From contig NIVC01000684.1 of assembly GCA_002269645.1 (NCBI GenBank), positions 310,001 to 374,000 of the forward strand: a DNA stretch of 64,000 bases, in the 5' to 3' direction. This DNA is from Macrostomum lignano. Its lineage: Eukaryota. Position 1 is the stretch's first letter; each line of letters starts with the position of its first letter. The position numbers and the translations under genes were made by a program. The notes beneath the pieces were generated by a model. That model was not told the origin of the DNA. It saw nothing but the letters and a program-made list of their open reading frames with translations, and ran no database searches. Of this stretch, positions 22,001 to 25,000 are shown piece after piece.

Positions 22001-25000
22001 CAATTTAACCCCAAATTAATGCGACTGCACTTGGAATCGAGCCTGGGCCGCTGGCACACCAGAGCGCCGCTTCAGACTAACAGGGCTACGGCCCCTTAAT
22101 AGCAATGTATGTGTTTCATCTATTCCTCAATTTTTAGGCGCTTTCGGTTACTTCGAGTGCACCGACAATGTCTCCAAATACACCTGCTTGAAACCGTTTG
22201 AATCCATTGGAAAGAAAACGCCAATTGCTATTCGTTTCTCTACTGTTGGTGAGTAGTATATATATGATATTATTGTGTTTATTTCATATTCATGCCTATG
22301 ACATCTTTGTGCAAAATATACTACTCATATAAATTAGCTAAGTATGCATATTCTTGCCTTGTCAATCAGTTGAAAACAAAAAAATTCTAGTATTATATAA
22401 AATTAACTATGGCTGTTGAAAATATTTATGTAAGCTGTTATTTTATTATTATTTCTAAGCCTTTTTTAGCTTAATAACGGTGCTAGACCATTATACAATA
22501 TGTAATACTAGTACTGTATAGTTGGCACAATAATAAAAACTGCTTATTGCTTTTATAAAATGTGTTGTACTCGCGTGAGTTAACAAAAACAGTGCAGGTT
22601 TTAAGTTTTAAGAAATGAGGATAATGCATTAGCCGTTCCAATATTAGCTGCGTGTCTACGGATCTGCCTGCGACGTTTTCTGTTGCGACATTTGCGACAT
22701 CTTCTGCGACGCTGTCCCGGTGCTGCTGCGGACCGATCCAACAGAGCTGGGGCCTCGCTTATTAATAGCGCTGCTAGTGCGCTTGTTCACGTAGCCAATG
22801 TACAGCACTGACCCTATGAATACGATGATCATCAGGCCGACTACAGCGGCGCCGACAGTGGCCGCGGCGGTTGCCCAGTCGCCAAACTTTCCACCAGATT
22901 TTGCCTCCTTAGCGTCCGGCTGTTGGTCTTTAGATTTTTCCTCGCATTTATCGCCGCTAAAGCCGTCTGCGCATTCGCATTTGGCTGGCTCCACCCGGTC
23001 CGGCCGTTTGTTATTGTTTTTGTTTGCTTGCGACTGGCGTACTAGAACTGTACACTTGCCGTTATTGGCGCACTGCAAATTGTCTTGACTGTCGCATGCC
23101 ACTTTTTCCGTCTGAAATGGAACAAGCGTTGGATAGTTTTGTGCGTTAAACTTGTTTTGACACTTGGTCGATCTTAATTTTGAAGTTGAAATTGAAGTTG
23201 AATTTGAAATTCTGAAGCCGATGTCGAATTTTGAAGAGAACAACAGATAGCTGGAATCGACACCGAACTTTAAGAATCCGAATCTTGAATCGACACCGGG
23301 TTTTAAAGAATCTCAGCCTTAAATCAACACCGGTTTTACATAATCTAAATCTTCAATCGACACGGGATTTAAAAGAATCTCAATCTTGAATCGACACTGG
23401 ATTTATTGAATCTCAGTCTTGAATCGACAACGGATTTAAATAATCTCGATCTTCAATCGACACGGGATTTAAAGAATCTTAACCTTAAATCGACACCGGA
23501 TTTAAAGAATCTCAATCTTGAATCGACACCGGATTTAAAGAATCTCAATATTGAATCGACACCGGATTTAAAGAATCTCAATATCTTGAATCGACACCGG
23601 ATTTAAAGAATCTCAATATCTTGAATCGACACCAGATTTAAAGAAATCTCAACCTAAATCGACACTGGATTTATTGAATCTCAGTTTTGAATCTACACCA
23701 GATTTAAAGAATCTTAGTCTTGAATCTACACCAGATTTAAAGAATCTTAGTCTTGAATCTACACCGGATTTAAGAATCTCAATATCTTGAATCGACACCG
23801 AACTTAAAGAACCTCAATATCTCGAATCGACACCGAACTTAAAGAACCTCAATATCTCGAATCGACACCGAACTTAAAGAACCTCAATATCTCGAATCGA
23901 CACCGAACTTAAAGAACCTCAATATCTCGAATCGACACCGAACTTAAAGAACCTCAATATCTCGAATCGACACCGAACTTGAAGAACCTCAATATCTTGA
24001 ATCGACACCGAACTTAAAGAACCTCAATATCTCGAATCGACACCGAACTTAAAGAACCTCAATATCTCGAATCGACACCGAACTTGAAGAACCCTAATAT
24101 CTTGAATCGACACCGAACTTGAAGAACCTCAATATCTTGAATCGACACCGAACTTGAAGAACCTCAATATCTCGAATCGACACCGAACTTGAAGAACCTC
24201 AATATCTTGAATCGACACCGAACTTAAAGAACCTCAATATCTCGAATCGACACCGAACTTGAAGAACCCTAATATCTTGAATCGACACCGAACTTAAAGA
24301 ACCTCAATATCTTGAATCGACACCGAACTTAAAGAACCTCAATATCTCGAATCGACACCGAACTTAAAAAACCTCAATATCTCCAATCGACACCGAACCT
24401 AAAGAACCTCAATATCTTGAATCGACACCAGATTCAAAGAAATCTCAACCTAAACCGACACAGGATTTAAAGAATCTGTCTTAAATCGACACAGGATTTA
24501 AAAAATCTCAACCTTGAATCGACACAGGATTTAATAAAGAATCTAAAAATTGAAATCTACATCGAATTAAGAAATCTTGACCTTGTATCGGAAAGAGATT
24601 TAAGAAATTTTAATCAACAGTCAAAAAAACAAACGGATCCTAATCTACCTCCATTTTACTTTCACTTTTGCAACACTGATAAATAAAATAAAGAAAAGAC
24701 ACATCTTACCGCATCAGCTGATAAAGAAGCGGCATATCCAACGTCGGGAATAAAGACTAACAGCATTAATGGCAGTACTAGAACTATTAACAATGATAGC
24801 GGCAGATTAGTTGACCCTTGGTGCAAAAGCATAGTTATTGAAGCCTAATTGTTTATACTCTAGTATTATTTATCTTGAATACAGGTGTCCTATATCTAGA
24901 TGACCTGTGATCTGGTCCGAGTCGAGGTTAGTTGCATAAGCCGCCACGTAGTTTACTTATGACGGCTTTCTCTGGCTGATTAAAAAGAATGAGGAATGAA

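Follow-up and report, generated by a model that had tools for sequence, protein, structure and literature searches.

Within a 64-kb window of the Macrostomum lignano genome (Mlig_3_7 assembly GCA_002269645.1, contig NIVC01000684.1), to which positions below refer, a two-exon gene lies antisense inside intron 3 of the catalase gene. We favour, with a probability of about 0.6, the reading that this nested gene is transcribed and constrained, that it encodes a type I surface protein with an EGF module, and that its nesting is of an ordinary kind. The gene is genuine, transcribed and protein-coding, and it already stands in GenBank as a hypothetical protein. The description that suits its product best is that of a cell-surface protein, restricted to this lineage, which crosses the membrane once and bears one divergent EGF-like module.

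Structure and transcription of the nested gene

The coding sequence of the nested gene is read from the minus strand in two exons (24832-24710 and 23111-22656) separated by a GT..AG intron, and after splicing its 579 nucleotides specify 192 amino acids. The coding part of exon 1 (24710..24832) opens with the ATG, spans 41 codons and encodes the signal peptide; it is identical in GenBank PAA78516.1, and it ends in a consensus donor (GCG/GTAAGA, last exon base 24710). The single intron (23112..24709, minus strand, 1598 bp, phase 0) runs from GTAAGA to TTTCAG, with the acceptor TTCCATTTCAG at 23112/23111. Exon 2 (coding part 22656..23111, minus strand) continues the frame in phase 0 and supplies residues 42-192, comprising the EGF module, the stalk, the transmembrane helix and the cytoplasmic tail, followed by the stop codon at 22656-22658. 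The original prediction had described a complete two-exon minus-strand gene in catalase intron 3 whose signal-peptide exon was missing from the open reading frame (ORF) track. The spliced coding sequence together with the rebuilt catalase exons bears this out, and exon 1 is indeed absent from the track, because its ORF of only 56 amino acids falls under the default ORF-listing cut-off of 60 amino acids.

The 192-residue prediction agreed at every position (100% identity, 100% coverage) with GenBank PAA78516.1 (hypothetical protein BOX15_Mlig028837g1, gene Mlig028837.g1), a protein that UniRef entry A0A267FXN6 calls 'EGF-like domain-containing protein', and the annotated GenBank gene range corresponds exactly to window positions 22656-24832. 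The gene was therefore not hidden, as had been supposed, since both it and a second copy are publicly annotated. The Mlig_3_7 GenBank annotation was built from RNA-seq transcript assembly only (StringTie/TACO, the TBONE boundary pipeline and TransDecoder), with no ab-initio prediction (PMC5730564). Because this RNA-seq-only annotation holds exactly the same two-exon coding sequence, a spliced minus-strand transcript of the nested gene, on which the original prediction had staked its validity, exists. A literature search for 'Mlig028837' found no paper mentioning the gene.

In order to define the host gene, a catalase sequence was used as tblastn query and splice sites were then placed by hand. 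The resulting model (19032..28124, plus strand) has seven coding exons (19032-19094, 20431-20599, 22138-22248, 25602-25862, 26315-26697, 27345-27796 and 28046-28124), all of its introns are GT..AG, and its product of 505 amino acids, which equals the annotated catalase in length, contains the Pfam Catalase and Catalase-rel domains. Intron 3 (22249..25601, plus strand, 3353 bp, GTGAGT...ACGCAG) is the longest catalase intron and encloses all coding sequence of the nested gene, from 22656 to 24832 on the minus strand, with the ATG of the nested gene 769 nt from catalase exon 4. On the other side, a putative poly(A) signal AATAAA (22442..22447, minus strand) is found 209 nt past the stop codon in both copies of the gene; from its position, the nested transcript would be expected to end before leaving the host intron, with about 170-190 nt left to catalase exon 3. 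As judged from these positions, the nested transcription unit can fit in intron 3 without overlapping the catalase exons.

At the 5' side of the nested gene, a TATAAA occurs at 24852-24857 (minus strand), 25 nt 5' of the ATG. It was considered as a promoter element and rejected, as it is too near for a transcript that includes the ATG. An additional ATG is located about 104 nt upstream of the start codon. Spliced-leader trans-splicing is common in M. lignano.

The only intron of the nested gene is occupied to about 80% by tandem-repeat arrays (23247..24534), consisting of 34.5 copies of a 35-bp unit (23247-24429) and 3.5 copies of a related 33-bp unit (24420-24534). Several short listed ORFs in 23247-24534 are translations of this tandem repeat. 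In copy 2 the 35-bp array is kept with 33.7 copies (L002 10299-11441).

Second genomic copy and selection on the reading frame

Copy 2 (Mlig028837.g2, PAA91305.1, contig NIVC01000090.1) is likewise antisense in catalase, between an RNF216-like gene and Lon. The two coding sequences differ at 14 of 579 nucleotides (97.6% identity), 10 of the differences being synonymous and 4 non-synonymous. Of the four amino-acid changes, two affect the signal peptide (L12P and V17F), one the inserted loop (Q67K) and one the tail (G166R), so that the cysteine framework and the transmembrane helix are free of replacements. Neutrality would make 77% of the changes non-synonymous; the ratio pN/pS of non-synonymous to synonymous divergence was 0.12 (binomial P(<=4/14) = 1.9e-4), and the ORF, the splice sites (donor and acceptor identical) and the AATAAA are intact in both copies. 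Taken together, this is good evidence that the nested ORF is translated and under purifying selection.

Predicted architecture of the protein

In a hydropathy profile of the spliced product, residues 6-37 and 119-151 stood out as hydrophobic. The first of these two stretches is the signal peptide, with a core at about residues 10-29 and a Kyte-Doolittle peak of 2.97 at residues 10-28; by the -3/-1 rule, cleavage is predicted after VGYA34. Next comes the EGF-like module (22944..23096, minus strand), which extends over 51 residues from Cys47 to Cys97. Its six cysteines (residues 47, 55, 61, 86, 88 and 97) are spaced 7/5/24/1/8. When all six frames of the window were translated, a relaxed six-Cys EGF pattern matched just once, at this place, and it matched in 0 of 100 shuffles. 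The spacing that had been proposed, the 24-residue, Asn/Lys-rich third loop containing a KR, and the Lys before the last Cys (FSGDKC) were all recovered in the spliced protein. The KR was considered as a convertase site and is unlikely to be one, being followed by Pro and having no Arg at P4.

Between Cys6 and the membrane lies a highly charged stalk of 22 residues, followed by the predicted transmembrane helix (22788..22874, minus strand; residues about 121-149 by hydropathy), which AlphaFold2 modelled as a helix at 119-152 with a predicted local distance difference test (pLDDT) score of up to 91. Since NKR follows directly after the helix, on what would be the cytoplasmic side, the protein is expected to have type I orientation, with a cytoplasmic tail of 43 residues (22659..22787, minus strand) that is Ser/Thr/Gln-rich and predicted to be disordered. 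The elements of a type I precursor, with one extracellular EGF module between signal peptide and transmembrane helix, are thus supported by ORF, hydropathy and AlphaFold2. The architecture, in part read directly and in part predicted, comprises a cleavable signal peptide, the EGF module, the 22-residue stalk, the transmembrane helix and a Ser/Thr-rich tail, and about 12 polar, Asn/Lys-rich residues appear to be inserted in the main beta-hairpin of the module.

A protein of this design would be delivered to the cell surface with its EGF module facing outward. There it would bind other proteins outside the cell, in juxtacrine fashion while still tethered, or once released by a cut in the stalk or the outer membrane leaflet, as in EGF/TGF-alpha/Spitz-type precursors; by analogy with these, extracellular binding in tethered or shed form is probably its mode of action.

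Domain, homology and structure searches

Several results weigh against the reading of the nested gene given above, some concerning its relationship to known proteins and its age, treated here, and others its fit to EGFR ligands, treated in the following section. A match to the Pfam EGF families had been suggested as a check of the module. EGF families did rank at the top, but both scored under their gathering cut-offs (EGF_2, PF07974, 17.1 bits versus 22.1; EGF, PF00008, 16.8 versus 21.5). The Pfam alignments cover only the Cys4-Cys6 part, that is, the C-terminal third of the module, because of the long C3-C4 loop; the six-Cys framework is complete despite the sub-threshold scores.

A word-indexed homologue search with the nested protein returned only its own cluster, and an exhaustive HMMER search of 1.84 billion representative proteins found no orthologue outside M. 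lignano, and therefore no function can be transferred by homology. The matches that HMMER did report, M. lignano chimeric models and multi-EGF proteins from diatoms and metagenomes, were rejected as relatives, since many repeats inflate their totals. Being the extremes of 1.84 billion sequences, they outrank a panel of 31 ligand sequences through selection, which is no evidence of kinship or of a 'structural' module.

Comparison with proteins of known structure was similarly indecisive. In a phmmer search of the PDB, no match was significant: E-values were 0.01-0.08 for Notch EGF modules (over the C-terminal third only), 0.17 for Spitz, 0.41 for an EGF/TGF-alpha chimera and 0.5 for heregulin. 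In a local phmmer comparison the ligands scored 1-15.8 bits and Notch1 EGF11-13 scored 10.8 bits, values that serve as leads only. Neither the PDB nor the local comparison placed the module with ligands over Notch-type or other EGF modules. AlphaFold2 run without an alignment gave low confidence, with pLDDT 57 for exon 2 and 62 for the EGF module alone. In the EGF-only model strands flank a disordered loop tip, as expected if extra residues were inserted where the main hairpin of an EGF fold turns, at a confidence too low to rely on; a Foldseek search of the model against the PDB gave 0 matches, so that structure did not discriminate between a ligand and a generic EGF module.

The nearest relative of the catalase was found in RNA contigs of the Logan runs SRR28338163, SRR28338164 and SRR28338166 (505 amino acids, 94% amino-acid and 85% nucleotide identity), presumably the transcripts of a related Macrostomum species. 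Neither the proteins searched from these three runs nor other data contained a counterpart of the nested gene, which could reflect low expression, fast divergence or lineage restriction. Finally, the two gene copies are recent duplicates, and this counts against taking them as a sign of long-term conservation; because the duplication is recent, the shared nesting says nothing on deep conservation. The DV1 line contains extensive duplicated blocks of at least 95% identity (PMC5730564).

Comparison with EGFR ligands and alternative explanations

The nested protein shows all the features by which Barberan et al. 2016 recognized putative EGF ligands (PMC4914847): the sequence is full-length, the EGF motif occurs once, and the module precedes a transmembrane region. 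As a comparison panel we used the part of their sequences that was legible after optical character recognition, about 35 ligands and candidates; statements on the panel below refer to this part. Four motifs of the nested protein had no match in the text of the supplement, where the sequence of the one listed M. lignano EGF-type ligand is illegible.

Canonical engagement of an EGFR is the best single guess for the partner of the protein, yet it is more likely wrong than right. In its fullest form this idea, which we regard as doubtful, makes the protein a divergent TGF-alpha/Spitz-type agonist that would be shed by ADAM or rhomboid proteases and would activate one of the eight M. lignano EGFRs; co-evolved receptor contacts would offset the replacement of Arg by Lys, and the long B-loop (C3-C4) would add specificity. 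The single-EGF type I architecture fits such an agonist, as do the spacings 7/5/-/1/8 and the G-F-x-G motif, which match the ligand pattern. Heregulin/NRG1 chains were the only ones in the PDB that aligned over the whole module, although at a non-significant E-value of at least 0.5. The outer half of the transmembrane helix (13 residues) is rich in small residues like the ASIASGA of rhomboid-cleaved Spitz, a point of resemblance only. The shortage of known ligands is also in favour: eight EGFRs have been reported in M. lignano, against which only one EGF-type and one NRG-type ligand are listed (PMC4914847), and with eight receptors to two listed candidates, ligands may be missing from the lists.

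The details of the module speak against such an agonist. In the ligand framework CX7CX4-5CX10-13CXCX8C four of the five spacings fit, whereas the C3-C4 loop, at 24 residues, is roughly double what classical ligands have (10-13) and exceeds the panel maximum of 17. In favour of an agonist, LIN-3 and gastrotrich candidates in the panel also have extended B-loops, of 15-17 residues. The loop of the nested protein is, moreover, polar, at a place where ligands contact receptor domain I. Arg precedes Cys6 in about 28 of the roughly 35 panel sequences, among them Spitz, Keren, Gurken, LIN-3 and every visible planarian sequence. Lys takes this place in no panel sequence, but it does in the nested protein. 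In human EGF this Arg41 forms a salt bridge with receptor Asp355, 0.05% of wild-type affinity is left in the R41A mutant, and an absolute requirement for the guanidinium group is described (PMC4282322). The Leu47 of human EGF sits in a hydrophobic pocket, and L47A keeps about 2% of wild-type affinity (PMC4282322). Its position is unfilled here: none of the 19 positions past Cys6 is hydrophobic, the first such residue being Phe at +20, whereas most panel ligands have L, I, V, W or Y at +4 or +5. Around Cys2 the nested protein reads LQ-C-A, with Gln before and Ala after the cysteine, and it lacks the Y, F or W that precedes Cys2 in most panel ligands, as well as the hydrophobic residue that ligands usually have after it; in human EGF, Tyr13 and Leu15 flank this cysteine and have a receptor-contact role (PMC4282322 and known complex structures). 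Four of the five receptor-contact positions are non-canonical, and these together with the doubled B-loop disfavour canonical EGFR engagement. There is, in addition, no significant similarity to any ligand. The original prediction of an EGFR ligand or antagonist is accordingly not established: architecture and four of five spacings agree with it, but the Lys before Cys6, the missing Leu47 equivalent, the Gln before Cys2 and the 24-residue loop do not. Phylogeny offers little help, since EGF ligands are poorly placed by it and form no ligand cluster, the EGF motif carrying little signal (PMC4914847).

An improbable alternative is that the gene yields a young transcript, confined to this lineage, with a functionless ORF, or else that its product binds EGFR without activating it, as an antagonist or decoy. 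No orthologue was found, even in proteins from the Logan RNA assemblies of the relative whose catalase is 94% identical, and the contact residues are non-canonical, both of which would suit this explanation. However, a functionless ORF is hard to reconcile with a pN/pS of 0.12 and with an ORF, splice sites and poly(A) signal that are intact in both copies, and nothing specific points to an antagonist. The antagonist Argos differs in architecture from the nested protein, being a secreted multi-domain protein that sequesters the ligand.

Still less probable is a regulatory coupling, in which antisense transcription of the nested gene would interfere with transcription or splicing of catalase, or the reverse, so that peroxide clearance would be inversely tied to signalling of the growth-factor type. 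Only position speaks for it: both copies have the whole unit in the longest intron of catalase, in antisense orientation. Transcriptional interference by nested genes is documented for some other systems (PMC3192792). Position is weak evidence for coupling, because intronic genes are common (about 6% of Drosophila genes, PMC3786989) and overlaps of vertebrate genes are mostly not conserved (PMC2151771). In addition, the predicted 3' end and the ATG of the nested gene are about 170 and 770 nt away from the catalase exons, so that no exon-exon antisense overlap is required, and the copies were duplicated too recently to show a selected arrangement. Regulatory coupling with catalase is not indicated. 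The conjunction of both ideas, a divergent ligand, partial agonist or antagonist of an M. lignano EGFR that is expressed reciprocally to catalase and links peroxide with EGFR-type signalling in wounding or regeneration, is scarcely credible.

Other features of the window

On the plus strand, the neighbours of catalase are genes for Lon protease and an RNF216-like RBR ligase. The catalase itself ends in ...ANKL (28113-28124), resembling the non-canonical peroxisomal targeting signal of animal catalases, which is KANL in human catalase. In catalase intron 6, at ~27803-27958, ~4 copies of a unit of about 34 bp (approximately GTTCATAGAATGGATTGCTAATCTATAGCATCTA) form a tandem repeat. This repeat has grown to ~2.2 kb in the second catalase copy (L002 4218-6428), and because of this expansion the two catalase copies differ mainly in array length and not in exons.

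Two further database models share the 90% cluster of the nested gene: UniRef A0A1I8GKR4 (2763 amino acids, 'protein kinase domain-containing') and a 665-residue MetaClust entry (P0003 and P0004). Both were rejected as chimeras, in which exon 2 of the nested gene is wrongly chained to antisense ORFs of catalase and Lon exons, A0A1I8GKR4 being a clean example of an older ab-initio model that fuses an exon with antisense catalase ORFs. The chimeric models map to positions 6610-60111 on the minus strand, and the mapping of their 5' part suggests a real minus-strand gene at 53968-60111.

Discussion

At present the nested gene is an annotated hypothetical protein gene whose nesting is of a common kind and whose product, to judge by its residues, is a non-canonical ligand candidate. 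M. lignano is a model for regeneration and stem cells in which the reported EGFRs outnumber the listed ligand candidates, and the practical value of the gene is modest, as an extra candidate for EGFR-pathway RNA interference screens in this animal. If the protein were a true ligand, its long-loop module and its Lys in place of the 'essential' Arg would inform on how ligand-receptor pairs diversify.

Among known systems, the precursors of EGF, TGF-alpha, Spitz and Keren resemble the nested protein most in overall plan: like it, they consist of a signal peptide followed by a single EGF module, which a short stalk connects to one transmembrane helix, and they end in a short tail. They also share the spacings C1-C2 7, C2-C3 5, C4-C5 1 and C5-C6 8, the Gly two residues before Cys3, and the G-aromatic-x-G motif between Cys5 and Cys6 (here G-F-x-G). 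The nested protein departs from them in its longer loop, in Lys for Arg, in the lack of Leu47, in Gln and Ala around Cys2 and in having no significant similarity to them. The putative planarian ligands Smed-egf-1 to -5 and -8 share its phylum and the minimal architecture of an EGF domain upstream of a transmembrane region. Those of the planarian sequences that are legible in the panel (egf-3, -4, -6 and -7) differ from it in keeping Arg before Cys6 and in having short B-loops, and local comparison of the nested module with planarian ligands gave no detectable similarity.

With regard to the loop, the best single-module matches (19-24.5 bits) were long-loop EGF modules of diatom and metagenome proteins, such as Skeletonema menzelii KAL7499540.1 and P0006, P0011 and P0014. 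These align over the whole module, have C3-C4 loops of 22-24 residues and in some cases are followed by a transmembrane helix. Unlike the nested protein, they are multi-module proteins of distant eukaryotes, and the C1-C2 spacing is 3-5 rather than 7 in the two-module transmembrane proteins P0011 and P0014 and in most modules of P0006, P0009 and P0013.

As for the locus, the literature searched contained no description of this pairing of a catalase host with this guest. Antisense intronic genes such as 2mit in Drosophila tim2 and LRRTM in alpha-catenin introns likewise have a whole gene in one host intron, on the opposite strand and with an intron of its own, and the position of the present gene within catalase is an ordinary case of a gene nested in a host.

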